Shown one piece after another: positions 39,334-55,531 of a stretch of 64,000 nt of DNA. Under the pieces are notes generated by a model. It ran no database searches. It was not told the origin of the DNA and worked only from the letters and a program-made list of their open reading frames with translations. The stretch spans positions 62,001 to 126,000 of the IMG/VR virus record IMGVR_UViG_3300032322_002561. One strand, given 5' to 3'. Numbering within the stretch: position 1 is the stretch's first letter; the number at the start of each line of letters is the position of its first letter. The position numbers and the translations under genes are program-made.

Positions 39334-40182
39334 TTACTTGCCCCAGCCATTGCCCCACAAGTCCACATGCAACCTTGGACTGTACCAATAGCCGCGCTTG
39401 AGTGCTTCGTCGGCCACGTGAATTCTGTTGCCATCATACACGCTGACAACTCCGCCCACAGGCATCACAAAAACTGGACCTGCAAAGCCGCGCTCGCGAT
39501 ATGTTGCCACGGCACGATCCAATTCTTCAAAATCTTCCAGGCGTTCCACTACAAATTTCAAGTAGGTGACTCCGTGTAATTCATATTCCCACACGACATC
39601 GGGCTTGATAGCACTGTCCCATGTTTCACCTGACACACTCAACTTGGGGCTAACACTAAAAGTGATTTCACCAAACCAGTCGTCCAAGTAGTTGGCAAAT
39701 TCCCGGTGTAGTTCTTGAGTGCCATTGGTTTCAAATGTGATGTGTCTAAGTCCACGCTCGTGCAAGATGTCTAACAGCTCGGGATAGATTCGTTGCCAGC
39801 CCAACAGTGGTTCGCCGCCAGTGATCACAAGATGAACGGGATTTCCGTTCTTGAACTGCATCCACTGATTGTTGGGCAACAAACTGTGAATACGATCTGC
39901 CAATTCTGCAGCAGTGTATGTTGGACTTAGATGTTTAAAAGCCGGGTGCCATGACGCATAACTGTCGCAACCAGTGTCCACTAGTGGTAATTCTTCAAAC
40001 GTTTTGTAAAGATGCACTGACTTGGCAATTTCATCTGGCTCAGTAGTTTTCTCTCCAGGCTTACAACCAAATCCGGCACACTGAAAGTTGCAACCAAACA
40101 TGCGTAAGAAAATACTGGGCACGCCTACATAGCGACCTTCGCCTTGTGCTGAATAAAATATTTCACTGACTTTGAAATCCAT
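39334..40182 (-). CDS. queE: 7-carboxy-7-deazaguanine synthase (radical SAM)
   Basis: SEIFYSAQGEG..G.P..FLR.FGC, CDS, ITGGEP, ETNGT, SPKL, PRLH. Confidence 0.92.
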   Translation of the reverse strand: MDFKVSEIFYSAQGEGRYVGVPSIFLRMFGCNFQCAGFGCKPGEKTTEPDEIAKSVHLYKTFEELPLVDTGCDSYASWHPAFKHLSPTYTAAELADRIHSLLPNNQWMQFKNGNPVHLVITGGEPLLGWQRIYPELLDILHERGLRHITFETNGTQELHREFANYLDDWFGEITFSVSPKLSVSGETWDSAIKPDVVWEYELHGVTYLKFVVERLEDFEELDRAVATYRERGFAGPVFVMPVGGVVSVYDGNRIHVADEALKRGYWYSPRLHVDLWGNGWGK

Positions 40183-40190
40183 ACTTGTTC

Positions 40191-40919
40191 CTATAATCTT
40201 GTAACTGTACTTAGACCGCTTTGAGTCATTGTCAAATTCTTTGCCTCATTAGCAATTTTAACACGAAGTTTGCAATTTGTCATCCAACCTGGCAATACTG
40301 CATCCAAATACTGTAAATGTTCCAGCGGTGTTGGATGCGGATCTCCTTGATTGCGCCAACCTTGTGCAAATACCGTGCTTCTAAAACTGGGTAGCATGAT
40401 GTCTAAAGCATCTCGATAAACATTCAAGACATCTTGATCTGGTGTCTCTGTGTCATCAAATTGATGTACATTGCCAAGATCACACACGCTTAAAAACCGC
40501 CAAGTTGCACCAGTTTGTTCTAGCACTGTTTTGGCGGCTTGAATCATGGCCAAGTCTCTTATGAGCGAACCACGTTCGGTCACAGCCGCCCGCACATAGT
40601 CCTTGTTGTATATGGGACAGGATGTGATATTGCCCAAAGTCTGCCAACGATCGGTGTAGCGATCCTCACGCATGACATTGGTCCAACATACCAACACAGT
40701 ATCTGACTCGCCCAAACTATGACGTTGGTTGGCTTCAATCAGGCTGTTAAAGATAAAGTGATTGCCAGCACCACTTTGAGCCCAATTTTGGTAATGTGCA
40801 AATTGTGTGCCCAAAAGGTCAGCCCAAGTGGGCCAACGATAATTTGTAAAACTACATCCAAAAGTAAAAAGTCTTGAGCCTTTTACCTCCACCACTCCTC
40901 CCAGGGAAACACAATCCAC
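40191..40919 (-). CDS. SGNH-like protein
   Basis: FGCSFT..WPTW, GAGN, DPHPT; start uncertain. Confidence 0.6.
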   Translation of the reverse strand: MDCVSLGGVVEVKGSRLFTFGCSFTNYRWPTWADLLGTQFAHYQNWAQSGAGNHFIFNSLIEANQRHSLGESDTVLVCWTNVMREDRYTDRWQTLGNITSCPIYNKDYVRAAVTERGSLIRDLAMIQAAKTVLEQTGATWRFLSVCDLGNVHQFDDTETPDQDVLNVYRDALDIMLPSFRSTVFAQGWRNQGDPHPTPLEHLQYLDAVLPGWMTNCKLRVKIANEAKNLTMTQSGLSTVTRL

Positions 40920-41419
40920 ACATCCTTGTCTGCTTTGTTTATGGCCACAGCTGAATATGTGACATCCAGTTTGCTCTTGCTTGACTCATTGTCATACAAG
41001 CATGCCACACGCACATTGTTGCCCCAGACTTCTTTCCAACGTTTGTCTTTGGGGAAACAACCGCTTTGCCAATCTTCTTTGATCCAGTTTAGTGTGGCGC
41101 CCGAATCGTTGATGTCATCTACAATCAAGATATTTTTACGTCCGTCTCCGCTGGCTTGCGGATCAAACTCTCTGTGACCATAGGCATCTTCAGCCATCCA
41201 TAAGTTGCTTTCTTGTTCAGCGCCATCTCGCAAGCTGACCTTGAGTGTTTCCATTCTGCAACCCAAGTACTGACTGATCAAGTTGGCCGGCACTAGACCG
41301 CCACGTGTTATACCAACCACATAGTCAGGCTGCCACTGGTCCCGGTGCAATTGTCTTAGAAGCTCTTGCACTTGCTTCTCCACGTCTTGCCACGTCAATG
41401 TTATTCGTTGTGTTGCCAT
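40883..41419 (-). CDS. Type I phosphoribosyltransferase (Gpt-like)
   Basis: VGITRGG, ILIVDDINDSGAT, WIVFPWE. Confidence 0.9.
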   Translation of the reverse strand: MATQRITLTWQDVEKQVQELLRQLHRDQWQPDYVVGITRGGLVPANLISQYLGCRMETLKVSLRDGAEQESNLWMAEDAYGHREFDPQASGDGRKNILIVDDINDSGATLNWIKEDWQSGCFPKDKRWKEVWGNNVRVACLYDNESSKSKLDVTYSAVAINKADKDVWIVFPWEEWWR

Positions 41420-43334
41420 GTGTTTCTACCGTTGCCTTTCCAAAATTTCTACGCCGTGCAAAATAAAACATTTCTAAAAAAGTAGGAAAACTCATGTTTT
41501 TGTCTTCGGGAAAATCTAGATTATACACTGTAGGCGATTCTTCCAAAGGCTGACCAAAAGTCAAGTAATCCCAGATATTGTAATCCAATTCCAAGGATTG
41601 TGGATATTGATCAATGTCTGGATATGCAATAAAATACTTGCGCTGAAACTTCATGACACTGTCCAACAGTTCCTTGGGCAAGTTATATTGTAACATAAAT
41701 CTGTATAAAAGGTCAAACACCTGATCGTATCTTGATTCTTCGTGCAGTTTTAATATGGTTCGGTGCATGAGGTTCCAACCATAAATTTCAATGCCCCCAA
41801 TGTCAGGATGGTCAATTTTGTCACTGCTCATCCAGTTTTGATTGTATTGTCTAGTATCCAGCATTTCTTTATGGAACCAGGAATCCTGCTGTATGAATTC
41901 AAATAAATCTTCATAGAATTGTGAGTAGTCAATATCCAGATATTGATAAACAAATCTGCTCAACAAAGTGCTCAGCCCATTGATATGAAAAGTGTTTATG
42001 AACCAAGAATACACTTGAGCATCCAGCATGGATTCATGTGGCATGTCCTTGGTGCCAGTGATGATTTCGATGCTTTCAATAATTTGTTCGTTTTTGTATG
42101 ATCCACTGAAGTAGTCAGTGACTCTGTTGCCAGTAATCTTAAAAAGTTTTCTTTGCAATAGATTCATTTCGGCATTTTCCAACAGTTGGGCCTGAAACAC
42201 CGTGAGTCCTGTGTGATTACCCATGCGGAACAATTTCCAAAAATTATCTTTCCAGGTCTGTAAACTTTCACCAGGCAAGCCAAGTATGAGTTCGGTATAG
42301 GTGGGAATGTTGCGCTGTTCACACAGTTCAAACACTTCTTCCAACTTGTTCATTTCCATGTTTTTACGACGAATGTTTTCCAGAACATCCACGTCCAAAC
42401 TCTGTACACTGAGTGTGAGACCCTGATTGAAGCCTGGTGCATTCAGTAGCTTGGTTATGATATCAACCACTTCACGTTTTTGATTCTTGGCCCAGGCCAC
42501 CGAGAAGGTCTTGGGAAATCCATAGCGTTCTTGTATTTCTATGATTTTATCTGCAATGAGATTGTCTCTGTCGGGGAACATGCCAAAGTTAGCATCGGTG
42601 ATTGAAATAAAACCCACACGGTGCTGTGCCATCCACTCAAGTTCCTCAAATACTCGATCCAAGCGATAGTGTTTGACCTTGTTGTAGGTCAAGCTGCCCC
42701 AGTCACAGAATGTGCAAGCAAATGGACATCCACGATTGGTTTCCAAGGTACCGTTCCACTCCACGTCGGGATTTTCTGCAATGATTTTGTCAAACACTCC
42801 GGTAAGATAGGGACTGGGTATGTCTTCAAGATTTTCTATGCGTTTGGCATCGCCTGTATTGATGGGTTCACCGTTGCGATTGATCAAGAGTCCTGGAATA
42901 TCGTCCCAGCAACGCTTTTCAAAGGCCTGTATTACTCGTTGAAAAGTTATTTCGCCCTCAAAACAAATAATCATGTCCATGTAGGGCTCTTTGCGAAAGA
43001 TATCAGGATCTGTGATGGCCGGCTCTGGCCCACCAAAAATTATCACACAGTCGGGATTGGCTGCTTTGACTGCACGAGCCACGGTGTAGTTGTACTGGTG
43101 ATTCCACACATAGGTACTAAAAGCCACCACATCGTTTTGAGCCAAGCGAGCCACCACATCATCTATGGCTTCACGCCGCCAAATCATGTCGGTGCACTCA
43201 AAATTTTCTCGAATCCATGGATCAGTGAGGGCATAGCTCCAAATCACTCCTGCGCTATAGGGCAAGTAGTGTGCATTCAGCTCTTTGGGTCCTTGTTGAA
43301 AATTGGGTTGTACCCAGGCAATCTTATAGGTCAT
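41325..43334 (-). CDS. B12-binding radical SAM protein
   Basis: LPYS, FGGP, ETNRGCPFACTFCDWG, ILGLPGE. Confidence 0.88.
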   Translation of the reverse strand: MTYKIAWVQPNFQQGPKELNAHYLPYSAGVIWSYALTDPWIRENFECTDMIWRREAIDDVVARLAQNDVVAFSTYVWNHQYNYTVARAVKAANPDCVIIFGGPEPAITDPDIFRKEPYMDMIICFEGEITFQRVIQAFEKRCWDDIPGLLINRNGEPINTGDAKRIENLEDIPSPYLTGVFDKIIAENPDVEWNGTLETNRGCPFACTFCDWGSLTYNKVKHYRLDRVFEELEWMAQHRVGFISITDANFGMFPDRDNLIADKIIEIQERYGFPKTFSVAWAKNQKREVVDIITKLLNAPGFNQGLTLSVQSLDVDVLENIRRKNMEMNKLEEVFELCEQRNIPTYTELILGLPGESLQTWKDNFWKLFRMGNHTGLTVFQAQLLENAEMNLLQRKLFKITGNRVTDYFSGSYKNEQIIESIEIITGTKDMPHESMLDAQVYSWFINTFHINGLSTLLSRFVYQYLDIDYSQFYEDLFEFIQQDSWFHKEMLDTRQYNQNWMSSDKIDHPDIGGIEIYGWNLMHRTILKLHEESRYDQVFDLLYRFMLQYNLPKELLDSVMKFQRKYFIAYPDIDQYPQSLELDYNIWDYLTFGQPLEESPTVYNLDFPEDKNMSFPTFLEMFYFARRRNFGKATVETHGNTTNNIDVARRGEASARASKTIAPGPVAA

Positions 43335-44197
43335 GCCTTATTTACTTGACTTAATTTTTGTTGTTTTTCAAAGTGAGTGTGTGGATTAGCAAACTGCACC
43401 ATTTGTTTGTTGACATCGTTTTGTGCAAGTTTTTCCCAGGGATCTTGTTTGTGCAAGAACACATTTTCAAAAAAAGTCATGTCCTGATTTCGCGTATTTT
43501 TCAAATAGGTAGCTATTTTGGCAGCATCCCTATGACGCAGTTCGATCATGGGTGCGCTGTGAAAGTCGTCTGGATCACTGGGTTTGCCCTCTAGCATGGC
43601 ACGACGTTTGAATGTTTCGTCACCGTTGTTGCCGGTCAAATCAAAGCGATCATGTTCAACCCACACCGGTATTCTCTGCCAGATATCCAACAAATAGGCC
43701 TGTTGACTCAACCAACCATCCTGCGTGGGGTGCGGGCTGATATACCCCAAGAGATCATACCATTCGCGTGGAACTATGGGGAATATACTGTAGGGATGAT
43801 CATTGTGAGTGTGGAAAGCCAAGAGCTTGAACTGACCGGTATAGCGAATGATTTCTGTGTCCCAGCCCTGAGTCTGCATGATGGCATCATCATTCCAGAT
43901 CACAATCCAATCACTGTCGGTCTTGGCTGCTAGTTTGTTGTTGTACACATTGAGTCTAATATAGCCCAAGGGATCAAACAACATGGCGGTGTAAACGGCC
44001 TTGACTGAATCAAGATAGGGTTTAATTGTGTCCGTGAAATATTTTTGTCCAATGGCATCATCACGGTCCAAGGCTATCATGATCTGCACACGATTGTAGT
44101 CGTCGGCGAGATCTATTAAACTTTGCAGACTGCGCATCAAGGCATCAGTTCGACCACGTGTGGGTAACAATATGGAAAGAGCATATTTGTGATTCAT
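43331..44197 (-). CDS. GT2/GT-A glycosyltransferase
   Basis: SILLPTRGR, WNDD. Confidence 0.75.
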   Translation of the reverse strand: MNHKYALSILLPTRGRTDALMRSLQSLIDLADDYNRVQIMIALDRDDAIGQKYFTDTIKPYLDSVKAVYTAMLFDPLGYIRLNVYNNKLAAKTDSDWIVIWNDDAIMQTQGWDTEIIRYTGQFKLLAFHTHNDHPYSIFPIVPREWYDLLGYISPHPTQDGWLSQQAYLLDIWQRIPVWVEHDRFDLTGNNGDETFKRRAMLEGKPSDPDDFHSAPMIELRHRDAAKIATYLKNTRNQDMTFFENVFLHKQDPWEKLAQNDVNKQMVQFANPHTHFEKQQKLSQVNKA

Positions 44198-44200
44198 TGA

Positions 44201-44791
44201 CTATCCTTCGTATATGGCACTGTTACCGGCATGCTCAAATACTTCTGCTGAACGTAATTTAACGCCTGATCCTACTGGATAGCGAGCCTTGTGTATGTTG
44301 CCGTTGGGGCAATGATAGTTGTTGCCTGTTTTAAAAATATGCAGTATGGTGGCCATTTCCTTATAGGCAAGTTCAGCAAACTTTTCGCAACCCACACCTT
44401 CCACGATCCTTAAATCACACACACCGCCTTGATCTTGCAATCCCAACTGGGCCATTTGTTTAAACATACCTTTGTGAGGATCATCATGTGCTACCACGAG
44501 AGTATGATCAAACATGTATTCGCTCCACTCTTTAAAGGCCTTGAGTCCACCAAAGTCCATGACCCAGTTGCGGTCATCCAGGGTTTCGCTTTCAAATACG
44601 AGTTTGATACCAATTGAGTATCCGTGTAGTAATGAGCAGTGACTATGTGTGCTACGCCATTGACGGAAGCAACAACTCAATCCGCGATCGTTGCCATATG
44701 TTTTTGTTGAAACGTATTTGGCTTTGGTCGTGCTTTCATTGAGCTGTCTTGTTGTTTCTTTTCCAATCTGTTCTTCTGTGTAATGAATCAT
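44201..44791 (-). CDS. queD: 6-carboxytetrahydropterin synthase
   Basis: HCSLLHGYS, WVMDFG, FDH, EKFA, VFE. Confidence 0.9.
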   Translation of the reverse strand: MIHYTEEQIGKETTRQLNESTTKAKYVSTKTYGNDRGLSCCFRQWRSTHSHCSLLHGYSIGIKLVFESETLDDRNWVMDFGGLKAFKEWSEYMFDHTLVVAHDDPHKGMFKQMAQLGLQDQGGVCDLRIVEGVGCEKFAELAYKEMATILHIFKTGNNYHCPNGNIHKARYPVGSGVKLRSAEVFEHAGNSAIYEG

Positions 44792-44871: not shown

Positions 44872-45240
44872 TTATTTAACTCGATAATTGCCACGCTCGG
44901 GAATAACATGGCGAACACCACCACGTGGATCTTCCATGTCACCTTTTCTGCGAGGAATGAGATGCACGTGCGGATACATAACTGTTTGCCCGGCAGCCTC
45001 TCCCCAGTTGATACCAATATTGAAACCATTCCACTCGCCAGAGTTGACTTGTGCCTGGCCCCATTTTAGTGCGTCAGCAAAACAATCTTCAATCACACCG
45101 TTGGCTGTGTACTTGGGCACAAACAACAAATGGCCTTCAGTAACTGGGTAACGATCACGATATACCACGACGTGGAAATCTTCACGTACTACATCATTCC
45201 AAGGTGCTATACCTAATCGTTGTGCTTCCTCAAGATCCAT
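44872..45240 (-). CDS. HIT-family nucleotide hydrolase
   Basis: GHLLFVPK, GFNIG..AAGQTV..PHVHLIPR. Confidence 0.9.
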   Translation of the reverse strand: MDLEEAQRLGIAPWNDVVREDFHVVVYRDRYPVTEGHLLFVPKYTANGVIEDCFADALKWGQAQVNSGEWNGFNIGINWGEAAGQTVMYPHVHLIPRRKGDMEDPRGGVRHVIPERGNYRVK

Positions 45241-45242: not shown

Positions 45243-45428
45243 TTATTTTGTTTTTTTTGTTACTACTTCAAGATCTAATCCCACAGCCAAGAGCCAGGAA
45301 TTAATGCGTTCGGCCACAACATCTTCGTGTATGGGATTATCCCACTGCATGTCTATGCGCACAGCAAGATCACCGGTTTCGACATGCAGATTTTGATATT
45401 GCAAATAGTAACTGACCTTGTTGCTCAT
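45243..45428 (-). CDS. Hypothetical protein
   Basis: 61 aa coupled ORF. Confidence 0.55.
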   Translation of the reverse strand: MSNKVSYYLQYQNLHVETGDLAVRIDMQWDNPIHEDVVAERINSWLLAVGLDLEVVTKKTK

Positions 45429-46264
45429 CTTGGTGCAAACTCCTGTTGCAGTTTGATATTGTCCATGAACTCTTTTTTAACACTTGAATCTGTGCTGAAC
45501 ACACCTCGTAACACTGTGGTTTGTGTCAGACTTGAGTGTGCCATGATACCACGATTTTCGCAACAACCGTGAGTGGCCTGGATATACACACCTACGTTGA
45601 CACTGTCTGTGGCTTTCATGATTTCTCGTGCGATGTCATTACATAGTTCTTCCTGAAGTGTACCACGACGAGCACACCATTGAGCAATACGAGTATACTT
45701 AGAAAGACCAATAAGTTTATTGGCAGCAATGATTCCGATATAAGCGACGCCGTTAACAGGCTGGTGATGGTGACTACACATACTACGCAACTCACTGCGT
45801 ACAACCAACATTCCTTCATATCTATCCTCCGAATCGTTAGGGAAAGCAGTAGCATCTGGTGCCGGCTCATAGCGTCCTGCCATGATTTCATTGAAATACA
45901 TCTTGGCCAAGCGACGTGCTGTACCTTGGCTGTTGGGATCTGTTTCGCGATCGATCAACAAAGTGTCTAGCACCTTTTCAAATGCTTCTGTGGCTTCATC
46001 GATTAATTTTTGTTTTTTGTTTTCATCTTCGATAAATTCACTGATGTTGTCTCCAGCCCAAAAGCGTTTGCCCGTGGCTCGCATGTTTTCACGAATCACT
46101 TGGCTCAGTGGGCGTCCTTCATCTAGATCAATCACGGCATCTTCATAACCAGGATGATATGGTGCCTCTGCCACAATACGGCTTTGTTGTAAGACATCGA
46201 ATGTTTTTTGGCTGGCATTATTTTTCACTGCGTTCTCTCTATCGTCACTGGTAAATGTTGTCAT
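45425..46264 (-). CDS. folE: GTP cyclohydrolase I
   Basis: SMCSHH, GLSKYTR, LQE, HGC..RG. Confidence 0.95.
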   Translation of the reverse strand: MTTFTSDDRENAVKNNASQKTFDVLQQSRIVAEAPYHPGYEDAVIDLDEGRPLSQVIRENMRATGKRFWAGDNISEFIEDENKKQKLIDEATEAFEKVLDTLLIDRETDPNSQGTARRLAKMYFNEIMAGRYEPAPDATAFPNDSEDRYEGMLVVRSELRSMCSHHHQPVNGVAYIGIIAANKLIGLSKYTRIAQWCARRGTLQEELCNDIAREIMKATDSVNVGVYIQATHGCCENRGIMAHSSLTQTTVLRGVFSTDSSVKKEFMDNIKLQQEFAPR

Positions 46265-46289: not shown

Positions 46290-46877
46290 TTAGATTTTTG
46301 CAAGATCAAATGGAATTTTCCTCAAGTCTGGATAAATTCCTGGTTGCGCTTTGGGCTCAATGCTTGGTAACAGTTCCAATCCCTTGGCACACAATTCCAA
46401 AGTAGGGCAATAATGCCATCCTAAAATTAATTCTGTTTCTTTCTCCCAGGGAATGTGCAGGTCTCGACCATCTGCACGTTGTCGACTGAACAATTGGTAG
46501 GCGTCTGGATCATCTAATAGTATAGCACCCACTTTGCCTAATTGTAAAGGTTTGGTCCAACCAAAACTCAAGCATTGAAACTGTCCAGGTCTGTACATGC
46601 CCGGTTCTAATCTTCTAGCACTATCCCAGATCCTTGTGTTTGCAAATTGATATTCACCTGTCCAGGGTTGGTCAGATAGAGTAAACTTTATACCCAAGTG
46701 GTACATGAGCATGGGCACACTGAGATAGGTATAGGCCGTGAACCTGGTTTGTTGCACAGCATCGTATCTCATGCAAAGTTCCAAAGCATGAGTACAGCCA
46801 TCTGTGACCACCACATAGGGTGCGCCGGTGTATTTGGCCAAGGCACTTTCAAAATCAAACAAGGCCTGAAAACTCAT
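46290..46877 (-). CDS. Short DegT-like PLP-dependent enzyme
   Basis: DGCTHALEL, WDSA, LSFGWTKPL..GKVGAIL. Confidence 0.75.
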   Translation of the reverse strand: MSFQALFDFESALAKYTGAPYVVVTDGCTHALELCMRYDAVQQTRFTAYTYLSVPMLMYHLGIKFTLSDQPWTGEYQFANTRIWDSARRLEPGMYRPGQFQCLSFGWTKPLQLGKVGAILLDDPDAYQLFSRQRADGRDLHIPWEKETELILGWHYCPTLELCAKGLELLPSIEPKAQPGIYPDLRKIPFDLAKI

Positions 46878-47920: not shown

Positions 47921-49752
47921 GAGTCTATTCTTTCAATTCGATTTCTCAAGCAATCGCTTTTTCTCAAAACATGAAACCCCATGTCGTTGAATTTAGATAG
48001 ATCAATATTGGATTTTATCAAGTATTCTCTGTCTATTTTGTTCCATGTTTCAATGTCGTATTCTGATTTTACCTGGCGATTGATTTCTTGATTACTGTCA
48101 AACAAAAACATTTGCTGTAATAGTTTTATACTGTCAGGTATTTGTCCAAAATATTCTGCACAGTCTAAGGCCAACTCCACGCACTGATCTTTTACTCCAT
48201 GCAAGATTTCAAAACTCTTGGTATACCAAAATTCAAGACCCATGTTGTTGTTAAGGTGTCCTTGAGTAAGCAGTTGAACGATTTCCTTTTCCACTGCTTG
48301 ATATTCCTGTGCAGGCGCTGTGTTTGATGTCTGTAACAGATATTTAAGGCGACTGTAAAATTCAAAATAAGATATATTCAATACATTTCTACAAAAGCGT
48401 GAAATAAGTTGACTGTAACCTTGACAGTGAAAATTTTGTATCAGCCAGCAAAACAAATAACTTTGCACCATATCCTCAGTGGTCATGGTGCTGGTACTAA
48501 CAACTATGTCACCAAATTCTACAATACCGCTGTTGTCAGCGCCGGTATAACTTTGATGATTGTACATGCGCCTGGTTTTAATTTTGTATAAAAACATCTG
48601 AGTGCGATTTATTTCAGTGTTTTCTAAAATTTGCAATAAGGAAATGTTTATAAAATCGTGTTGTCCTGATTCCAATAATTGGCATAAGCCTTGTTCCCAA
48701 CTCTGTCTAGTTTCCAAAGGCAGTCCCAGAATCAAATCTGTATAAGTGGGCAATTTGTATTTGTTTGACAAGCTCAACATGCGTTCAAGATCATTTATCT
48801 CCATGTTGTCGCGTTTGATTACCTTGAGAGTGTCAGGGTTGAGTGTTTGTGTGGCAAGAGTAAGCCCACGAGCCAATTTACCAAATGCCTTGAGTATTTT
48901 AAACACATGCTCGCCACTGTTCTTGGGAAAATTTATGGCCACGTACTCTACAGCACTGTTGGCAAACTTTCGATTCATCATCTCAGCAATTTGTAAATCT
49001 CTTTCTTTCAATATGCCAAAATTTCCATCAGCTATGAAAACTGTGGTCACACAGTTATTTTGGACCAACCAGTCTAGTTCTTGTTCTATGCGTGACAAAT
49101 CAAAATTATATAACTTGCTGGCAGTCAGTGTGCCCCAATCACAGTAGGTGCATGCATAAGGACAACCTCGATTGGTTTCCAATGTTGCATCAAAGTACTC
49201 ATGTGAGTCTCTGTTTTTGACAATGTCATCAAACAGTCCCAACACATAAGGACTTGGATAGTCTAGGTCTTTTATTCTTGGCCCTTTTACCAATTTTTCC
49301 AGAGGTTGACCACTGGCAATTTTGCGCAGTATGTCAACAAAGGCTTGCTCACCTTCGTTGTTGACAATGACATCAATGTAGTCATATTCAGTATGACGGA
49401 TTCCGGTCTGAGGTCCACCAAATACTATGACACAATTGGGCCAGGCTTGTTTGATACACTTGGCCAACTCCAGGCAGTATTGTTCGTTCCAAACATAGAT
49501 ACTGAACGCACAAAGGTTTGGTGCCTTTAGTTCTTGCAACACTTCAGCAAGAGGCTGACGTTTATAGTGTAGTTTGACCAGGCGCCAATTTTGCACCACA
49601 TCGTCAAATTGTTGAGCATAGGCCCACAGACAACTCACAGAATATGGCAACCAAAATTGATACTTGTTTCCAAATTTGACACTGTATTGTGGTTGGAAAA
49701 GATGAATGGCACGTTGAGACATAGTCTCTGTAATTATCGTCGACGTCGTCAA
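47917..49752 (-). CDS. B12-binding radical SAM protein
   Basis: LPYS, FGGP, ETNRGCPYACTYCDWG; paralog of 41325..43334. Confidence 0.88.
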   Translation of the reverse strand: MTTSTIITETMSQRAIHLFQPQYSVKFGNKYQFWLPYSVSCLWAYAQQFDDVVQNWRLVKLHYKRQPLAEVLQELKAPNLCAFSIYVWNEQYCLELAKCIKQAWPNCVIVFGGPQTGIRHTEYDYIDVIVNNEGEQAFVDILRKIASGQPLEKLVKGPRIKDLDYPSPYVLGLFDDIVKNRDSHEYFDATLETNRGCPYACTYCDWGTLTASKLYNFDLSRIEQELDWLVQNNCVTTVFIADGNFGILKERDLQIAEMMNRKFANSAVEYVAINFPKNSGEHVFKILKAFGKLARGLTLATQTLNPDTLKVIKRDNMEINDLERMLSLSNKYKLPTYTDLILGLPLETRQSWEQGLCQLLESGQHDFINISLLQILENTEINRTQMFLYKIKTRRMYNHQSYTGADNSGIVEFGDIVVSTSTMTTEDMVQSYLFCWLIQNFHCQGYSQLISRFCRNVLNISYFEFYSRLKYLLQTSNTAPAQEYQAVEKEIVQLLTQGHLNNNMGLEFWYTKSFEILHGVKDQCVELALDCAEYFGQIPDSIKLLQQMFLFDSNQEINRQVKSEYDIETWNKIDREYLIKSNIDLSKFNDMGFHVLRKSDCLRNRIERIDS

Positions 49753-50702
49753 CGTTTAAGATACCATGCCCATGCATGTTTGATGATATCTTCAAGTTTC
49801 CACTGCGGTTTCCAGCCACTTGCCGCCGTGAACTTGGCACAATCAGCGGTAAGCACAGCTGGATCTCCAACTCGTCGTGTGCCTACATTGTATTCTAGAT
49901 CCTTTTGTGAAATTTTGATGGCACCATGTATGATTTCTAGATTGCTGTAACCGGTACTTGTGCCAAGATTATATACTCCGCTGGCGATGTTGCTATCAAT
50001 GGCCATGACATGTGCATCAGCCAAGTCCTCTACATGCACATAATCTCGAACACAGGTGCCATCCTCAGTTTCAAAATCTGTACCATTTAACACAAAATCT
50101 CCTGTGTTGTCACGCAGGGCTTCCAACACTCTGGCAATGATATGTGTTGCACCAGGTTCTTGACCATGACGACCCTGACTGTCGGCACCACAGGCATTGA
50201 AATATCTAAAACTCACATAGTCAAGACCATATGCTTGACGATAGCTGTTCATGATCATTTCTACCATGAGCTTGCTTTCGCCATAAGGACTGATAGGTTC
50301 CTTGGGATCTACTTCATGACAAGGAGTCATGACCGGTGTGCCGTACACAGCCGCTGAACTTGAAAAAACAAATCTACATGTGGGCATGGTCTTGCACACC
50401 AGATTCAACAATATGATTGTTTTGACCACGTTGTTGTCGTAATATTCGGCTGGATTTTTTATGCTGGGTCCTACGAGGCTGGTACCGGCACAATGTATGA
50501 TTGCATCGGGACGTTCTTGTACAATGCGACTGAGGCTTTCTTTGCTGACAATATCTGCAACAACAAACTGCTTGATGTGATCTGCTAGATGTCGCGGGCA
50601 GGGTCTACGGTCAATGCCAATCACTTCATGACCAGCATCCAACAGTTTCAAGGCAGTCTGTCCACCAATGTACCCAGCAGCTCCGGTTACAACTACTTTC
50701 AT
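49749..50702 (-). CDS. galE: UDP-glucose 4-epimerase
   Basis: TGAAGYIG, SSSAAVYG, YGESK, RYFNACGA, DGTCVRDYVHV. Confidence 0.92.
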   Translation of the reverse strand: MKVVVTGAAGYIGGQTALKLLDAGHEVIGIDRRPCPRHLADHIKQFVVADIVSKESLSRIVQERPDAIIHCAGTSLVGPSIKNPAEYYDNNVVKTIILLNLVCKTMPTCRFVFSSSAAVYGTPVMTPCHEVDPKEPISPYGESKLMVEMIMNSYRQAYGLDYVSFRYFNACGADSQGRHGQEPGATHIIARVLEALRDNTGDFVLNGTDFETEDGTCVRDYVHVEDLADAHVMAIDSNIASGVYNLGTSTGYSNLEIIHGAIKISQKDLEYNVGTRRVGDPAVLTADCAKFTAASGWKPQWKLEDIIKHAWAWYLKR

Positions 50703-51907
50703 GATTCAATTTTCCTTACATGATACTTGGCCCGACTCACATGATCACGATAGCGATTGCCGGCACGGTTCCACTGCTCACCTTGACCTAGAATGATATC
50801 TACAATACGATCTACAGTGCCATCGGTCCAGTCCGAAATGAGTCCCATGTTGTGATGTGGTTGTTCCAACAAGTTTTCCAGCTTGTGAAACGCATCATCT
50901 ATACTCCAAGGAACATAGAGCCGGTTTGGGTCATCGGCAAAAGTTTCAGGGAAACTGCGATAAGCAGGATATAGAACATTGGATCCGAGAGTATCAGCTT
51001 CTGAAACTGTGTTAGACACCCAATCTTGAAGAGCACAATTAAACAATACCCTAGTGTCATTGAGAAGATTGTAGTAATCATTTTTCTTTAAGTTTTCATA
51101 AATTGTTAATTTGCCCTGATGCTCTAGTTCTCTTGCACGATTGATGTACCTAATGTTGTTGCTGCGCAATGGACCGCCTTGAAACACAGAAAACTCAACA
51201 TTTTTATGTCGTCCTTGACTGTGATACATTTCGATCAAGTCCATGTAAAAGTCTGGTTGTTTCTCTTGGTCAAATCTTGCAGCGAAGCCCACACGCATTT
51301 TACGATCAGCAAATGGTCGCACATTCTGTGCACCACCGATGCGTTCTAACACTTCCGCTTTGCCAAATGCCAGTCCACTGATGTTGTAGATTGGTGCAGT
51401 CCAGCCTGCGATCCTCATGTGGGCTACCATCTCTTCGTTGGTGGCCAGCACATGTACATTGGGAATCTGATTTACCATTTTTTCATACGTTGACATCCAG
51501 CCTGCCATGCCCCATACATGAACAAAATCATCCGGGTCAATGGCTTGAGCAAGACAGCGTACAAAAATACGAGGACGCTGAGACTCAGGCACTTGATCCA
51601 GAATATAAGGTAAGCTCTCGATACCGGGCTGAAACATGTCTTCAAAGTAGATAACATCTTCATTGGTAACTTCTCCATTCCTCATCATCTGCACCAGATT
51701 CATCATCTGGCTCATGCTAAAATAACTGCGACCGTGTGCGTCCAACACCTGACCAACACTGATGCTCTGTGTGTTGTCTATGGTGTCGCCCGGCACATAG
51801 ACCACGTCCAGCCCTCTACGATCAAACACACGACGATTCCACTCTGTGAGTTGCAGGGTATAGCGAGCTTCATAGCTCTCCAAGCCCATGTAGAATATCT
51901 TTCTCAT
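50699..51907 (-). CDS. GT-B fold glycosyltransferase
   Basis: ARFDQEKQP, ALQDWVSNTVSEA (E-x7-E-like), YPAYRSFPE. Confidence 0.7.
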   Translation of the reverse strand: MRKIFYMGLESYEARYTLQLTEWNRRVFDRRGLDVVYVPGDTIDNTQSISVGQVLDAHGRSYFSMSQMMNLVQMMRNGEVTNEDVIYFEDMFQPGIESLPYILDQVPESQRPRIFVRCLAQAIDPDDFVHVWGMAGWMSTYEKMVNQIPNVHVLATNEEMVAHMRIAGWTAPIYNISGLAFGKAEVLERIGGAQNVRPFADRKMRVGFAARFDQEKQPDFYMDLIEMYHSQGRHKNVEFSVFQGGPLRSNNIRYINRARELEHQGKLTIYENLKKNDYYNLLNDTRVLFNCALQDWVSNTVSEADTLGSNVLYPAYRSFPETFADDPNRLYVPWSIDDAFHKLENLLEQPHHNMGLISDWTDGTVDRIVDIILGQGEQWNRAGNRYRDHVSRAKYHVRKIES

Positions 51908-52125
51908 ATGTTGCGTCCCAGTCTGCGAGCATCTTCCAGCCACATGTTCTTGGCGTTCTTGCCTTGAGTGAACTTGTTGTACTGTTGCCAGGCATAGGCT
52001 CGGAAGTTATAGAGATCCTCCTCACGGAATCTGTAGCCGTATTCACGGCAAAATTCCAAGAAATCGCCAAGATCTTCTTGACATTGTACAGCACGAGGGT
52101 TGAGCCGATATTCACGCTTGCCCAT
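51904..52125 (-). CDS. Hypothetical protein
   Basis: 73 aa; AAGGA RBS. Confidence 0.65.
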   Translation of the reverse strand: MGKREYRLNPRAVQCQEDLGDFLEFCREYGYRFREEDLYNFRAYAWQQYNKFTQGKNAKNMWLEDARRLGRNI

Positions 52126-52136
52126 GGTATTTCCTT

Positions 52137-52586
52137 TTAATATTTGATTGATAAGTTAGGGCGAGAAAGTTCATACTTGATAAGGCAACCGTTCTCGCCA
52201 TCCTCGGCCACCTCAATCCATACAGCACGCTCAGGATAGCGATCAGCTATCTGTGTATATAGGTCATCTGCGATCATCTCACAACTTTTAAAATCCAGTT
52301 CTAAAACGGAATCCTGACCGTTATACAGCGACTCGAGCCATCGTTTGAACTGGATGAATTCGATGTCCCGGTCATTGTGGAACACATCGATCCACACCCG
52401 GAAATGAAAAATGTGCCTATGAGCATTAGCAAGAAACGATACATCATACTCTCCTGGAGTATTTAACCGGGGATCAGTGGCCGCCGCTGGATAGCGATGT
52501 ATGCCTTCTCTGCGGAATGTGACCCAGATCTTGCGCTCTGCGTGTTCGCGGATGCGTTCTACAGTTTCTCTTTGTTCTTGTATCAT
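52137..52586 (-). CDS. dpdL: QueD-paralog T-fold protein, DpdL-like (putative CDG decarboxylase)
   Basis: LANAHRHIF (LxxxHRHxF), RDIEF, SCEMIA, EDGENG. Confidence 0.7.
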   Translation of the reverse strand: MIQEQRETVERIREHAERKIWVTFRREGIHRYPAAATDPRLNTPGEYDVSFLANAHRHIFHFRVWIDVFHNDRDIEFIQFKRWLESLYNGQDSVLELDFKSCEMIADDLYTQIADRYPERAVWIEVAEDGENGCLIKYELSRPNLSIKY

Positions 52587-52909
52587 CGTTTCAATAACTC
52601 CATGGTTACAATTCGGCCAATAGCTTCACTCAAGTTTTCGTTTTCGGTCACAATGTGCAACTTGCGAACATAGTTGTCGGTCTTGGGATCAGTCCAACGT
52701 GTCTCGATCAAGGTGCCACCCGATACAGTCTGCACACTGAAACGAATAGGATCAGTGAGATCAATCTCATTGTCTGAGACTACAATCATTTCATCTTGTC
52801 CGCGTCTCCTACCTCTAATGGTCAACGGTACAAGAGCGTCATCCTCTCGTAGGTCGCGACTGAAATCCCAACCCCATTTCATCATTCTTGACCATAACCA
52901 TCTAATCAT
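52583..52909 (-). CDS. Hypothetical protein
   Basis: Coupled ORF starting MIRWLW. Confidence 0.6.
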   Translation of the reverse strand: MIRWLWSRMMKWGWDFSRDLREDDALVPLTIRGRRRGQDEMIVVSDNEIDLTDPIRFSVQTVSGGTLIETRWTDPKTDNYVRKLHIVTENENLSEAIGRIVTMELLKR

Positions 52910-53460
52910 TTGTTTACCTTTTGTGTTGTTGCGTTGTGTGAGAAATACAATTCTTGTATGCAAATACCCTTGTCAAGATATTTTAACACATCTACTATGA
53001 GTTCAGCAACACTGTGTGTGGTCATTTTGGCGGCTTTGATATCATGTGATAGTTTGGTGTCTATCCAGTGCGGCATGATGTTGATCAAATTTGGCAGTGC
53101 AAATTTACGCATGGATCTTGCGAATTCTAGTTGTTGAGTTTTTTGTAGTTGATATTCAATACCCAGCAAACTTCCAGATTCCAGGACCACAGCACTGCCA
53201 ATATTCACAATGGTACGTGGTTGACCGTACCAGACCTTGTACAACCGTTTGAGCAGTTCGGTTTGCCCATATTCGTGATAGGCATTGTTTATAAAACAGT
53301 CATAATTCTGTGCTTCTAACACTATGCGATCCAGATCTTGAGACTTGGCAATATCATAACCATTTTCTAGCGCAAAGCCCACGATCTCATGATGGCTTGA
53401 CAATGATGTGTATAGTTCAAGGCCCAGGCCACCGGTATGGCCGGTCATGGCAATTTTCAT
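52906..53460 (-). CDS. Short-chain dehydrogenase/reductase
   Basis: TGHTGGLG, FINNA, NIGS, YQLQK. Confidence 0.8.
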   Translation of the reverse strand: MKIAMTGHTGGLGLELYTSLSSHHEIVGFALENGYDIAKSQDLDRIVLEAQNYDCFINNAYHEYGQTELLKRLYKVWYGQPRTIVNIGSAVVLESGSLLGIEYQLQKTQQLEFARSMRKFALPNLINIMPHWIDTKLSHDIKAAKMTTHSVAELIVDVLKYLDKGICIQELYFSHNATTQKVNK

Positions 53461-53990
53461 TTGACAGGTTTATCTTGGCTGTATTGGTCCCAACTAGTAA
53501 ACTTGTTGCGATCCAGTAGGTCATGTAGACTGTGACACCATACTCCAGCATTGGTAGCAGCAAAATCACGATCATCCAACTTGATTGTGGCATTGTAGCC
53601 CAGTTGATTTAGATAGGGCAACTTGACCGAGATCATGGGAATAAATTTGTGATGTTCAACTAGGCCTGATTCCAAGAGCCCCTCTACTGATTTTACATCT
53701 AGGTCCAAGGTACACCAATAGTTTCTGTCCAACAAGGCCTGCACCATGTGTTCCCAGTCCCGCCAAGTTTCTGCATCGTTGGAGTCCGGATTGGGGAAAC
53801 TGTGGTTGGCTCCAAAATACACATGTGTAATTGGCAGTTTGCTACGCCGGTCTGCTTCGCCTATTTGCCATAAAATCTGATCTACTGATTCAACACCCAC
53901 CACGAACATGGTTCTGTGTTGATAGCATGGTGTGTGTTCAATTTCGGTACCTACAAAAAATCTTGTTTCCTCGTGTCCTTGACGATTCAT
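53457..53990 (-). CDS. Hypothetical protein coupled to dpdA
   Basis: FFVGTEIEHTP, HVYFGANHSF, TNAGVWCH. Confidence 0.7.
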   Translation of the reverse strand: MNRQGHEETRFFVGTEIEHTPCYQHRTMFVVGVESVDQILWQIGEADRRSKLPITHVYFGANHSFPNPDSNDAETWRDWEHMVQALLDRNYWCTLDLDVKSVEGLLESGLVEHHKFIPMISVKLPYLNQLGYNATIKLDDRDFAATNAGVWCHSLHDLLDRNKFTSWDQYSQDKPVK

Positions 53991-55531
53991 AACAACTCCT
54001 CTAGTTGATCCAATTTGTCCTGATCAAGCTCATCTGGATCGGTTGCGGCAACTTCCTCAACATCAAACAGAGCGTCAAACATGGGTCTGGCACTGACCAA
54101 TCGTTTGCCAGTAAATCCACGTGTACCAATGATCAGATCCAAGACCTTGCCATAGTGTTCAATTCTTTCAAGACTACGTTGGCGATCCTGTTGACTAAAG
54201 ATATCTTCTACAATGTTACGGAAATCGTTATCGGGTGTGGTGCGTCCGGCCAGCATGTTGGGTTTTTGTCCACGATCGTACAGTTCATTGGCCGTTTGCA
54301 CAGCATTGATATGACTCCAACAGTTGTGTCCCATGAGCAAGGCATAGCTGAATGAATCCCAAGATGTCTTGCCTTCTTTGCCAATCTTGTTGAGATCGCC
54401 TGGACGATACACACAAACATCGCTGATGTTGAGTCGTTTGCTTATGGGCGATTCCTCAAAAACAGGATGAATGTTATCCTGCGTCACAGCGTCACGGAAA
54501 CTGCGTGGGTCAGTGGCATACTTCTTGTCATCGGCGGTGGGAGCCATGCTGTAGGTCCACTTGTCGAGTGATTCATAACTGCTGTTGTAGTAGAGCTGAC
54601 CATTGGCAATGGCCAAGAATGGTGATGCACAATCAAAGCTGATGGTAAAGTTTGGATTGTGATAGTGTCTGATCGCACGCTGAATATCTGTTAGCAGGCA
54701 AGCCCACTCTAGTTTGCTAGTGCCCAAAAAGTGCATCCAGTCGTGTATGCCTGTTTCTAACAGTCCGTCGTGAATGAGATTCACAATGCGTCGTAGCACC
54801 AAGTGTACGTCACACATGTTTTGTCCTCCCATGCCCCAACCATTGAAGTGACGTCCTGGATACTGAGCCGGGTCCGAATACTTTTTCATGGTCTCATACC
54901 ATGCGTCAGCCTCTACATGGTTGGCACCTTGTAGCACATTCAAGAACCGAGCACCACCATTTTCAATACCTTTGCGATTGGCAATAAAATAATCATTGTT
55001 GTAGATAGTGGCTTCTACTGCATCCTGATAGTTGCGGATGCCAGTTTTCTTTGTAGAACCTGGCCACTTGGAAGTCCAAGTGGGAATGTCCAAGGTCAGG
55101 CCGTATGTGGCAATGCCATCCTGCCACTTCAACACAGCCTCACGTTTTTTTTGTGCCTTGGGGCATCCGCTATTGGCTTTCCAATCACCTTCCCATACAC
55201 CTTTGGCAATTTGGAATCCACCTGAATCGCACAACAAGGTTGATCCAGGGTCACGATTGCGCAACATGTCCTCTTTGGGATTGAACTTGCTAAGATCTAA
55301 GTCGGCGTGTCCAGCCGAATACAGAGCCCACTGATACGGAAACAGACCTTGTTGTGGATTCAAAAAATTCATCATTTCCATGTCCGGCATGTTCTTGGGC
55401 ATGCGAGTCTGATCCACATAATTTTCATGACGTTGGCGACCAATATAGGTTGAATAAAAACTACTAATGGCCGGCAAAAAGATTGCGTAGTCTTTCTGCC
55501 TTGCAGTCAGGTCATGTTGGCTGAATTCCAT
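53987..55531 (-). CDS. dpdA: TGT-family transglycosylase, DpdA-like (deazaguanine DNA insertion)
   Basis: DSGGFQ, LDIP, VLQG, GMGG, HFLG, SFD; near folE/queD/queE. Confidence 0.8.
   Translation of the reverse strand: MEFSQHDLTARQKDYAIFLPAISSFYSTYIGRQRHENYVDQTRMPKNMPDMEMMNFLNPQQGLFPYQWALYSAGHADLDLSKFNPKEDMLRNRDPGSTLLCDSGGFQIAKGVWEGDWKANSGCPKAQKKREAVLKWQDGIATYGLTLDIPTWTSKWPGSTKKTGIRNYQDAVEATIYNNDYFIANRKGIENGGARFLNVLQGANHVEADAWYETMKKYSDPAQYPGRHFNGWGMGGQNMCDVHLVLRRIVNLIHDGLLETGIHDWMHFLGTSKLEWACLLTDIQRAIRHYHNPNFTISFDCASPFLAIANGQLYYNSSYESLDKWTYSMAPTADDKKYATDPRSFRDAVTQDNIHPVFEESPISKRLNISDVCVYRPGDLNKIGKEGKTSWDSFSYALLMGHNCWSHINAVQTANELYDRGQKPNMLAGRTTPDNDFRNIVEDIFSQQDRQRSLERIEHYGKVLDLIIGTRGFTGKRLVSARPMFDALFDVEEVAATDPDELDQDKLDQLEELL

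Follow-up and report, generated by a model that had tools for sequence, protein, structure and literature searches.

Does a lake-water jumbo phage that carries the genes for placing 7-deazaguanine in its DNA also encode the means to attach a sugar to that base? The question is raised by a run of genes on the minus strand (39334-55531) in a window of 64,000 nucleotides, positions 62,001 to 126,000 of the IMG/VR record IMGVR_UViG_3300032322_002561, where a 7-deazaguanine pathway without QueC lies next to a glycosyltransferase gene. An earlier note, made from the sequence alone, had described this arrangement and inferred that the DNA carries 7-deazaguanine (DG) or 7-carboxy-7-deazaguanine (CDG), possibly further glycosylated. 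We found that the arrangement itself is real, as all the genes named in that note are present on the minus strand and are joined mostly by 4-nt start/stop overlaps in one translationally coupled run.

Genes of the deazaguanine pathway

Three genes encode the enzymes that lead from GTP to CDG. The folE gene (45425-46264; GTP cyclohydrolase I) matches PF01227 with an E-value of 2e-39 and its product is 62% identical to the FolE of phage Phosso. The queD gene (44201-44791; 6-carboxytetrahydropterin synthase) matches PF01242 and phrog_2389 (E 4e-32) and carries C52xxxH56G as in other phage QueDs, with the catalytic C52 and H56 being invariant among phage QueDs including that of phiST. The queE gene (39334-40182; 7-carboxy-7-deazaguanine synthase) matches phrog_2076 with an E-value of 2e-53 and its product is 49% identical to the QueE of BUCT-ZZ01, whereas the QueE models of NCBIfam match below the curated cut-off.

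The dpdL gene (52137-52586) encodes a QueD paralog and proposed CDG decarboxylase with the motif LxxxHRHxF, here L52-A-N-A-H56-R57-H58-I-F60. It is homologous to phiST CGPG_00067 and ACP17 gp125, and matches phrog_17812 (E 1e-33). Positions H30, L52, H56, H58, F60 and H70 are invariant across 11 homologs, including the DpdL of phiST and of ACP17.

The dpdA-like gene (53987-55531) encodes a protein of 514 aa that gave no Pfam TGT hit. However, its AF2 model (pLDDT 81, pTM 0.83) is predicted to fold as a tRNA-guanine transglycosylase (TGT), as all top 50 Foldseek PDB hits are Z. mobilis TGT with a probability of 1.0. The residues D102-S-G-G-F-Q107 and D300 are invariant in 18 relatives. Homologs were found in PA5oct (gp168, 36% identity), in Vibrio 2.275.O (_468, inside a QueF/QueC/FolE cluster) and in Phosso (gp440), so that this TGT-fold gene also sits in deazaguanine clusters in other phages (PA5oct, Vibrio 2.275.O). 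The protein represents a divergent subfamily, related only distantly to the ACP17-type DpdA (hhalign E 4e-5).

A purine (xanthine/guanine-type) phosphoribosyltransferase (PRTase) gene lies at 40883-41419 (PF00156, E 1e-17), with xanthine PRTase as the best NCBIfam match. Its homologs lie next to queE in BUCT-ZZ01 and between dpdL and queE in PA5oct (gp163). A gene for a HIT-family nucleotide hydrolase/transferase (44872-45240) matches PF01230 (E 2e-9) and phrog_19494, and was found in 40 of 80 relatives within the fetched flanks.

Immediately downstream of the run is metK (37724-38851, minus strand), where all three S-AdoMet synthetase domains were found with E-values of 1e-33 to 1e-57; it could supply the three radical SAM enzymes, although this is inference. 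Replication genes lie immediately upstream on the same strand (55535-59903), namely a sliding clamp (55535-56257), ORF312 and a family B DNA polymerase (57243-59903; DNA_pol_B, E 7e-38). The clamp is homologous to PA5oct gp170 and to the protein annotated as a sliding clamp in the Phosso record.

Absence of QueC, QueF and pyrimidine-modifying enzymes

The earlier note had reported no queC or queF in the window, and we extended the search to the rest of the contig. No QueC was found in the 236-kb contig, where the only hit, at 13.8 bits, is a NadE-like protein, and no QueF was found in the contig. In addition, no QueC was found in two complete relatives with terminal repeats (352,754 and 346,856 bp). 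No ThyA homolog, TET/JBP or C5-methyltransferase was found in the contig or in two complete relatives, so no known hydroxylated pyrimidine acceptor is available for a DNA glycosyltransferase.

Glycosyltransferase and its association with dpdL

The GT-B glycosyltransferase gene was first delimited as 50699-51943, but the real start is probably M13, at 51907. Its product belongs to a GT4-like family of about 790 clusters at 50% identity. The AF2 model (pLDDT 92) gave retaining GT4 enzymes (BshA, MshA, SenB and SPS) in Foldseek searches. The donor-site residues R211, E215 and K216 are invariant and E303 is at least 90% conserved, so that the enzyme looks active as judged from sequence. The GT-B is the most conserved protein of the module in this lineage, with 77-90% identity against 52-67% for DpdA.

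Members of this family travel with dpdL. All 16 phage records with a tblastn match to the GT-B are among only 29 dpdL-bearing records out of 50,697, and profile searches added Phosso (hhalign E 4e-52) and BCSR5 (HMM E 2e-74). The gene lies within a few kb of dpdL in seven cultured phage lineages, namely BUCT-ZZ01 (65% identity), PA5oct-like, ACP17, Xanthomonas X1/BUDD, Phosso, BCSR5 and this one; in ACP17 and PA5oct it lies between dpdA and dpdL. Among eight distant metagenomic members at 31-37% identity, six have dpdL beside the glycosyltransferase, whereas the other two contigs are only about 3 kb. The glycosyltransferase is thus linked to dpdL and dpdA well beyond chance across unrelated phage lineages. 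On the other hand, five DpdL phages lack it, and phiST, the only phage here with proven plain dDG, lacks it.

Accessory and lineage-specific genes

The remaining genes differ in how widely they are kept among 80 relatives. Two proteins without a family match are common: ORF73 (51904-52125), a small basic protein conserved between dpdL and the glycosyltransferase, was found in 77 relatives, and ORF177 (53457-53990), an alpha/beta protein and recurrent neighbour of dpdA, in 74. Homologs of ORF177 lie upstream of ACP17 dpdA (gp122, E 5e-13) and between dpdL and the glycosyltransferase in the metagenomic contig L098; it gave no Pfam or PHROG hit and only weak leads in an Atlas search. ORF126 (52583-52963; basic, pI 9.6) was found in 36 relatives, ORF242 (40191-40919) in 12, next to queE, and the accessory ORF348 (46874-47920) as weak homologs in eight, all three without a family match. 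The short Rossmann/SDR-like protein of 184 aa (52906-53460), listed as an SDR in the earlier note, has a weak RmlD_sub_bind match (E 2e-4) and was found in only one of 80 relatives, so it is accessory.

The sugar-related genes are specific to this lineage or accessory. The galE-type NDP-hexose 4-epimerase gene (49749-50702) matches PF01370 (E 1e-56) and phrog_540 (nucleotide-sugar epimerase), with the motifs SSSAAVYG and YGESK read directly from the sequence, and was found in 78 of 80 relatives. Four further genes were not spelled out in the earlier note. A compact DegT/DnrJ/EryC1-like protein of 195 aa (46290-46877), a possible sugar aminotransferase, matches PF01041 (E 1e-8) over its N-terminal part and was found in 68 of 80 relatives, so it is a real gene and not a fragment; we read SFGWTKPL as its PLP-lysine motif, which is our own interpretation of the sequence. 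A GT-A-like glycosyltransferase of 288 aa (43331-44197), specific to this lineage, matches phrog_14945 (E 3e-12); its only homolog in a cultured phage is in Pelagibacter phage HTVC008M, and no match was found in the DpdL-carrying cultured phages. Two accessory B12-binding radical SAM enzymes, of 611 aa (47917-49752) and 669 aa (41325-43334), contain PF04055 plus PF02310 and match the KedN5-like C-methyltransferase subfamily (E 1e-54) and KedN5-like enzymes (E 7e-78) respectively, both below the curated cut-off. The 3' end of the second overlaps the PRTase start by 95 nt. B12 radical SAM genes occur in 14 of 80 relatives and are almost absent from cultured phages.

The sugar genes lie in a hypervariable, putatively sugar-tailoring cassette that also collects unrelated genes such as an MFS transporter and an FG-GAP protein. 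GalE, HIT and the other sugar genes are not general partners, as they are conserved only within this lineage, where synteny may only reflect kinship. However, other sugar genes recur in other modules bearing the glycosyltransferase, with a second glycosyltransferase in BUCT-ZZ01 and an epimerase-like stub in PA5oct.

A possible glycosylated 7-deazaguanine

The best reading of the locus is a phage DNA-guanine replacement module of the QueC-less DpdL type, extended by a dedicated glycosyltransferase, although we hold this reading tentatively. The interpretation in the earlier note is therefore partly supported: the pathway is QueC-less and of the DpdL type and the glycosyltransferase is linked to it, whereas a glycosylated base is unproven. 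The gene content, the conserved motifs, the absences and the linkage were observed in this analysis, and the conversion of GTP to CDG by FolE, QueD and QueE follows from established enzymology of the families. The removal of the carboxyl group by DpdL to give DG, an activity never shown experimentally, and the exchange of this base for guanine in phage DNA by the TGT-fold DpdA are proposed in the literature and inferred here, while the glycosylation and everything downstream of it is a new inference without chemical data for any phage bearing the glycosyltransferase.

In this view, the GT4-like GT-B would add a sugar from an NDP-hexose to the deazaguanine, either as the free base before insertion or once the base is in DNA, with GalE supplying or interconverting the donor. 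One possible site is the exocyclic N2, as in huimycin and dapiramicin, and carbon 7 is another. In this lineage the mini-DegT, the GT-A, the B12 radical SAM enzymes and other cassette genes would tailor or extend the sugar, and the purine PRTase would most simply recycle the guanine released by the base exchange. The expected outcome is virion DNA that resists guanine-dependent restriction, carrying what would be an undescribed sugar-bearing guanine replacement.

Published observations are in line with this reading. PA5oct DNA resists G-containing restriction sites (PMC12191111), and ACP17 dpdA plus dpdL alone gave no dDG in E. coli, for which the authors suggested that other enzymes may be needed (PMC10516641). 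In addition, a GT4-domain enzyme, HuiG, glycosylates N2 of a 7-deazapurine base (PMC7439116; bioRxiv 2026.04.15.718813). Other observations speak against it, as DG has no obvious hydroxyl handle, the GT-B model is closest to GT4 enzymes with small-molecule acceptors and not to T4 alpha- or beta-glucosyltransferase, and the family is acidic with a median pI of about 6. Since phiST makes plain dDG without this glycosyltransferase, it is not needed for insertion as such. A complex prediction of the GT-B with DpdL gave no answer.

Alternative explanations

The alternative that survives best, though we consider it unlikely, is that the DNA carries plain dDG (or dCDG) as in phiST and that the GT-B is an auxiliary factor which leaves no sugar on the final base, for example through a transient glycosylated intermediate, a carrier or activation step, or a scaffold. 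The GalE, DegT, GT-A and radical SAM genes would then serve another target, such as virion proteins or host surface glycans. This is favoured by phiST reaching about 100% dDG with FolE, QueD, QueE, DpdL and DpdA3 only, by the occurrence of the GT-A homolog in HTVC008M and not in the DpdL-carrying cultured phages searched, by the unrelated genes in the cassette, and by the small-molecule GT4 fold. However, the GT-B is restricted to DpdL modules in many lineages, it is the most conserved protein of the module in this lineage, its donor-binding residues are intact and no other acceptor pathway is encoded.

A more doubtful alternative is a nucleotide-level, tubercidin-like route in which the PRTase joins CDG or DG to PRPP, DpdL decarboxylates the base or nucleotide, and the 7-deaza-GMP is processed to the dNTP and incorporated during replication. 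HIT and host kinases would handle the nucleotides and the TGT-fold protein would have a secondary or repair role. A purine PRTase recurs in the modules of this phage, BUCT-ZZ01 and PA5oct, tubercidin clusters are QueC-less and use CDG plus a PRTase plus a decarboxylase, the module abuts the DNA polymerase and clamp genes, and an ADG nucleoside was seen in cells infected with phage CP220. On the other hand, the PRTase is missing from the fetched module regions of ACP17, X1, Phosso and BCSR5, whereas each fetched cultured-phage module has a TGT-fold gene. The best family match of the PRTase is a guanine/xanthine salvage enzyme, which fits recycling of released guanine equally well, and no dGTP-specific pyrophosphatase or dedicated kinase was found in the run.

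Finally, a pterin glycoside in place of a DNA base, with a glycosylated biopterin-like cofactor made by FolE, a PTPS-type T-fold enzyme, a short SDR and a GT4 enzyme, as in cyanobacteria, is very unlikely. It is favoured by the match of the GT-B model to the UDP-glucose:tetrahydrobiopterin glucosyltransferase of Synechococcus PCC 7942 (5ze7, rank 25, E 1e-9), by the closest cultured homolog of the glycosyltransferase being in a Synechococcus phage, and by the SDR-like gene in the run. However, the 5ze7 match is no better than matches to dozens of other GT4 enzymes, QueE (which commits CPH4 to CDG) and a TGT-fold enzyme are present in every module, DpdL lacks the catalytic cysteine that PTPS and QueD chemistry needs, and the SDR is found in only one of 80 relatives.

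Comparison with related systems

The QueC-less route to dDG by FolE, QueD, QueE, DpdL and DpdA is already known from Cellulophaga phage phiST (Cui, Hutinet et al., NAR 2023, PMC10516641), and what appears to be new here is the GT-B gene. Both loci have FolE, QueD and QueE without QueC, a QueD paralog with LxxxHRHxF, a divergent TGT-fold transglycosylase that Pfam barely or never detects, and a position next to replication genes. However, a whole-genome profile search found no member of the GT-B family in phiST, which also has no GalE, DegT, GT-A, PRTase or B12 radical SAM genes, and the transglycosylase here is of a different subfamily (PA5oct gp168 type).

The PA5oct-like jumbo phages (Wroclawvirus; gp168-gp167-gp166...gp163-gp162) share the DpdA subfamily, the GT-B homolog between dpdA and dpdL, a nearby PRTase and QueE, and the clamp and DNA polymerase upstream. 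PA5oct, whose modified base has not been identified chemically, has only an epimerase-like stub (gp164) and has no DegT, GT-A or B12 radical SAM genes.

In huimycin and dapiramicin biosynthesis, a 7-deazapurine core is made by FolE, QueD and QueE homologs and a glycosyltransferase with a GT4-type domain (HuiG) attaches a sugar to the base at the 2-amino group. These products are bacterial secondary metabolites built on a preQ0 core (QueC present) and O-methylated, and they are free small molecules and not DNA.

Phage DNA glycosylation on hydroxylated pyrimidines, as by the T4 alpha/beta-GT on 5hmC or as arabinosyl-5hoC in RB69 and DLP3 (PMC13326640), likewise involves a virus-encoded glycosyltransferase and NDP-sugar supply genes clustered with base-modification genes, with the sugar genes being hypervariable among relatives. 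In the locus described here, by contrast, the glycosyltransferase is GT4-like and does not match T4-type enzymes most closely, no ThyA homolog, TET/JBP or C5-methyltransferase is encoded in the contig or in the complete relatives, and the partner pathway makes a purine analogue.

Genomic setting of the module

The stretch (bases 62001-126000) comes from a single 236,309-bp IMG/VR virus contig judged to be 68% complete. Close relatives reach 347-353 kb with terminal repeats, and sequencing runs labelled lake-water metagenome hold parts of the stretch, so this is a freshwater jumbo phage. All the genes discussed lie on the minus strand, and from dpdA (which begins at 55531) to queE (which ends at 39334) most neighbours overlap by 4 nt or are a few bases apart. 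A family B DNA polymerase and a sliding clamp lie upstream, whereas a SAM synthetase (37724-38851) lies downstream, 0.5 kb beyond queE. A megablast search with the 16-kb region against cultured phages gave no match.

FolE, QueD, QueE, a HIT protein, a purine PRTase, GalE and a GT-B glycosyltransferase were recognised by Pfam, PHROGs or NCBIfam. The observation made in the earlier note, namely a 7-deazaguanine pathway without queC but with a DpdL-like gene, coupled to a glycosyltransferase and galE, was confirmed by our analysis, although the note did not spell out two B12-binding radical SAM enzymes, a GT-A-like gene and a compact DegT-like gene in the same run. A search of the remaining genome for queC had been named beforehand as a check, and neither QueC nor QueF was found in the contig, while two complete relatives were also found to lack QueC. 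The weak QueC hits in this genome and in three relatives are NadE-like NAD synthetases. This phage encodes such a protein, and in relative G004 the homolog lies directly beside queE (G000:C1:183297-183434, within the fetched locus L001:955-1755; L099:1006-1761).

DpdL and the predicted transglycosylase

The 149-aa protein at 52137-52586 carries L52-A-N-A-H56-R57-H58-I-F60, that is the LxxxHRHxF signature published for DpdL (PMC10516641) in place of the CxxxHGH of QueD. In eleven homologs the L, both H and the F are invariant and the R is at least 90% conserved. By tblastn and blastp the protein is 34% identical to CGPG_00067 of phage phiST (E 5e-14) and 51-54% identical to the DpdL of ACP17 (E 2e-42), and it occurs with FolE, QueD, QueE and a DpdA-like protein but without QueC. 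DpdL was also observed as the C-terminal domain of longer proteins in Vibrio phage Bakedbeans (gp176, 383 aa; L090:9251-10402) and in another fetched locus (about 255 aa; L095:430-1194), where the N-terminal parts match no known family.

The 514-aa protein at 53987-55531 matches no sequence library. No hit to Pfam TGT (PF01702) was obtained at E up to 10, either in the protein scan or in a six-frame scan of the genome, and NCBIfam, PHROGs and a PDB sequence profile also gave nothing. Only the fold search identified it, as an AlphaFold2 model built on 18 relatives (pLDDT 81, pTM 0.83) hits Zymomonas mobilis tRNA-guanine transglycosylase in all of the top 50 Foldseek matches with a probability of 1.0 (TM 0.40-0.43 by query and 0.50-0.57 by target), in agreement with the (beta/alpha)8 fold of the TGT superfamily. 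The DSGG(F/Y)Q motif, which holds the catalytic Asp of the superfamily, and a second conserved Asp are present, as D102-SGGFQ and D300 (within 'ISFDCAS') are invariant in 18 sequences and align with DSGGLQ and 'ISYDST' of the ACP17-type DpdA, although equating D300 with the TGT nucleophile is an inference and no BLAST-level similarity to the ACP17-type DpdA was found. Homologs lie in deazaguanine clusters of PA5oct and of Vibrio phage 2.275.O.

The glycosyltransferase and its linkage to DpdL

The GT-B (50699-51943) is 24% identical over its full length (E 5e-16) to PA5oct gp167, a gene that lies between dpdA (gp168) and dpdL (gp166) of that phage. A tblastn search of 50,697 phage records found sixteen records with the GT, all of which are among the 29 records that hold a DpdL, and in each of them the GT is within about 2 kb of dpdL. 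It directly follows dpdL in BUCT-ZZ01 (65% identity) and lies between dpdA and dpdL in ACP17, while Xanthomonas phages X1 and BUDD and the PA5oct group also carry it. Profile methods add Sinorhizobium phage Phosso (hhalign E 4e-52), in which the GT directly follows dpdL, and Burkholderia phage BCSR5 (HMM E 2e-74). Six cultured phage groups carry the GT. On the other hand, whole-genome profile searches found no member in phiST, RHph_I1_18, Bakedbeans, D479 or Ahp1.

A phmmer search showed that the family has about 790 clusters at 50% identity. Eight members at only 31-37% identity were looked up, and six of their contigs have a DpdL beside the GT, usually with FolE, PTPS and radical SAM genes, whereas the other two contigs are only 2.8 and 3.2 kb. 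Two unrelated metagenomic phage contigs with the dpdL-GT pair also encode a UDG domain fused to a family A DNA polymerase (L103:9965-12629 and L104:8344-10847), an architecture that a 2026 NAR paper ties to T-modified genomes, and these phages may modify two bases. PAPS-reductase-like PP-loop proteins sit inside the dpdL-GT modules of X1 (L006:10852-11385) and, more weakly, of BCSR5 (L091:11276-11923), where they could activate the CDG carboxylate in place of QueC.

The phage lineage itself is extremely common, as at least 7,986 GT protein clusters at 90% identity were scored in public metagenomes and 595 IMG/VR stretches encode a relative. A first protein homology search with the GT returned only near-identical environmental copies, which shows abundance but adds no diversity.

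The model of the GT (pLDDT 92) is a GT4-like retaining GT-B with two Rossmann domains. Its nearest Foldseek matches (E 1e-11 to 1e-13 to BshA, MshA, glycogen synthase, SenB and PimA) also include sucrose-phosphate and trehalose-phosphate synthases and, further down, a pteridine glucosyltransferase. R211, E215 and K216 are invariant and E303 is at least 90% conserved in 45 sequences. By analogy with GT4 enzymes these are assigned to donor binding in the C-terminal domain, as an R/K pair and an acidic residue of the EX7E region. The match to Pfam Glycos_transf_1 falls below the gathering score (19.5 bits against a cut-off of 26.4), and one of eight scanned relatives passes the curated cut-off at 29.4 bits. 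The C-terminal extension of a 655-aa GT contains no recognisable domain. No T4-type DNA glucosyltransferase was found among the top 50 PDB matches. The predicted fold therefore favours a small acceptor, but it cannot exclude a flipped-out base in DNA. Net charge and pI are uninformative as a hint of DNA binding since the DpdA-like protein is acidic too, and a complex prediction for the GT-B with DpdL was uninformative in either direction.

Other genes in the run

Eighty IMG/VR relatives, in which the GT is 77-90% identical, keep the order clamp, dpdA, ORF177, (ORF126), dpdL, ORF73, GT-B, galE, DegT195, folE, HIT, queD, GT-A, (B12 rSAM), (PRTase), (ORF242), queE. Within this lineage the GT is the most conserved protein of the module, whereas DpdA is only 52-67% identical. 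The B12 radical SAM genes (14 of 80 relatives), the uncharacterised ORF348 (8 of 80) and the SDR-like gene (1 of 80) are accessory.

Both B12-binding radical SAM enzymes (41325-43334 and 47917-49752) have an N-terminal cobalamin-binding domain (PF02310) and a radical SAM core (PF04055), with the CxxxCxxC cluster motifs 'CPFACTFC' and 'CPYACTYC' seen in the translations, as expected of B12-dependent (class B) radical SAM methyltransferases, but their KedN5-subfamily scores (262 and 186 bits) are far below the 700-bit cut-off. A tblastn search of the 50,697 phage records found only two unannotated faecal contigs with partial matches. The 3' end of the 669-aa enzyme gene (41325-43334) overlaps the start of the PRTase gene (40883-41419) by 95 nt in another frame, which fits a recent insertion of the accessory gene. 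The DegT/DnrJ/EryC1-like protein (46290-46877), at 195 aa about half the usual length, is conserved in 68 of 80 relatives and may be a minimal PLP sugar aminotransferase or a non-catalytic remnant.

Between galE and folE the relatives carry different gene sets (L021:12222-17589, L055:12167-18169, L029:12244-13449 and L007:15721-18204, all fetched loci of relatives), which include a radical SAM enzyme, a 2OG-Fe(II) oxygenase, an NDP-hexose C-methyltransferase, an AMP-binding enzyme, an MFS sugar transporter and an 828-aa FG-GAP repeat protein. This looks like a hypervariable sugar-tailoring cassette. It is also a general insertion hot spot inside the module, so the linkage of galE, DegT and GT-A to the base modification is weaker than that of the GT-B.

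Outside the lineage, the PRTase recurs in the BUCT-ZZ01 and PA5oct modules, while ORF177 (an unknown protein encoded next to dpdA) recurs in ACP17 and in the metagenomic contig L098. BUCT-ZZ01 has a second GT and PA5oct an epimerase-like stub. We considered whether ORF177 and the SDR-like protein (SDR184) could be a split version of the gene of about 360 aa that follows dpdA in PA5oct and Vibrio 2.275.O, but there is no similarity and the PA5oct gene is instead the GT-B homolog. A cytidylyltransferase-like nucleotidyltransferase (36127-36660) lies about 2.7 kb downstream of queE, but it is not BLAST-similar to the enzymes of this kind annotated near the PA5oct and X1 modules.

Proposed role of the glycosyltransferase

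The conversion of GTP to CDG by FolE, QueD and QueE is established for these families, whereas the decarboxylation of CDG to DG by DpdL, which lacks experimental demonstration for any member, and the base exchange into DNA by DpdA are proposals from the literature. Our analysis shows the gene content, the conserved motifs, the predicted folds and the association of the GT-B with DpdL, while the activity of DpdL, the action of the TGT-fold protein on DNA rather than tRNA and any glycosylation of the deazaguanine, either as free base or in DNA, are inferred, as no chemical data support the last of these. The interpretation in the earlier note, that the DNA carries DG or CDG which may be further glycosylated to give an undescribed base, is partly supported. 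We consider a functional linkage of the GT to the pathway likely, but the presence of a sugar on the final DNA base is only a tentative reading.

No thymidylate-synthase homolog, TET/JBP dioxygenase or C5-methyltransferase was found in this contig or in two complete relatives, so the known hydroxylated-pyrimidine acceptors (PMC13326640) are not made. PA5oct DNA resists enzymes with G in their sites, and ACP17 dpdA plus dpdL alone did not give dDG in E. coli. Both fit a requirement for further module genes. The GT gene that lies between the two ACP17 genes, and the ORF177 homolog, were apparently not included in that experiment, which may explain the negative result. The reading also provides a candidate for the unidentified 'modified G' of PA5oct, a therapeutic-candidate Pseudomonas phage.

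A nucleotide-level route remains as a rival, since tubercidin clusters are QueC-less and use CDG with a PRTase and a decarboxylase. However, the PRTase may simply recycle the guanine that base exchange releases, which is our inference.

In its furthest form, which we regard as possible but less likely than not, the hypothesis is that of a widespread but unrecognised class of phage DNA modification in which the 7-deazaguanine that has replaced guanine carries a sugar installed by a dedicated GT4-like family co-evolving with DpdL. In this abundant lake-water lineage the sugar would be further diversified by the hypervariable cassette, through an epimerase, an aminotransferase, C-methylases including the B12 radical SAM enzymes, oxygenases and a second GT. 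This would be the first glycosylated purine analogue found in any natural DNA, and it would bear on the evasion of restriction, CRISPR and END nucleases as well as on the sequencing and cloning of such genomes.

Comparison with known systems

All the phage DNA glycosylation described in the literature we could search is on pyrimidines (5hmC, 5hmU and 5hoC), and a sugar on a guanine replacement would be a new chemical class of natural DNA. Within the open-access papers and preprints covered, nothing was found that links a glycosyltransferase to DpdA, DpdL or 7-deazaguanine DNA. A precedent outside DNA is HuiG, which carries a GT4-type domain and puts GlcNAc on the 2-amino group of a 7-deazapurine base in huimycin.

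The core of the pathway is already known, as FolE, QueD, QueE and DpdL with a divergent DpdA and without QueC form the published route to 2'-deoxy-7-deazaguanine, which fully replaces dG in phiST. What appears to be undescribed is the tight, cross-lineage association of a dedicated GT4-like family with DpdL, together with a TGT-fold subfamily that Pfam does not detect, and these point to a glycosylated 7-deazaguanine as a testable possibility. There are two kinds of DpdL module, with and without the GT, and the only chemically characterised one, that of phiST, is of the GT-less kind.
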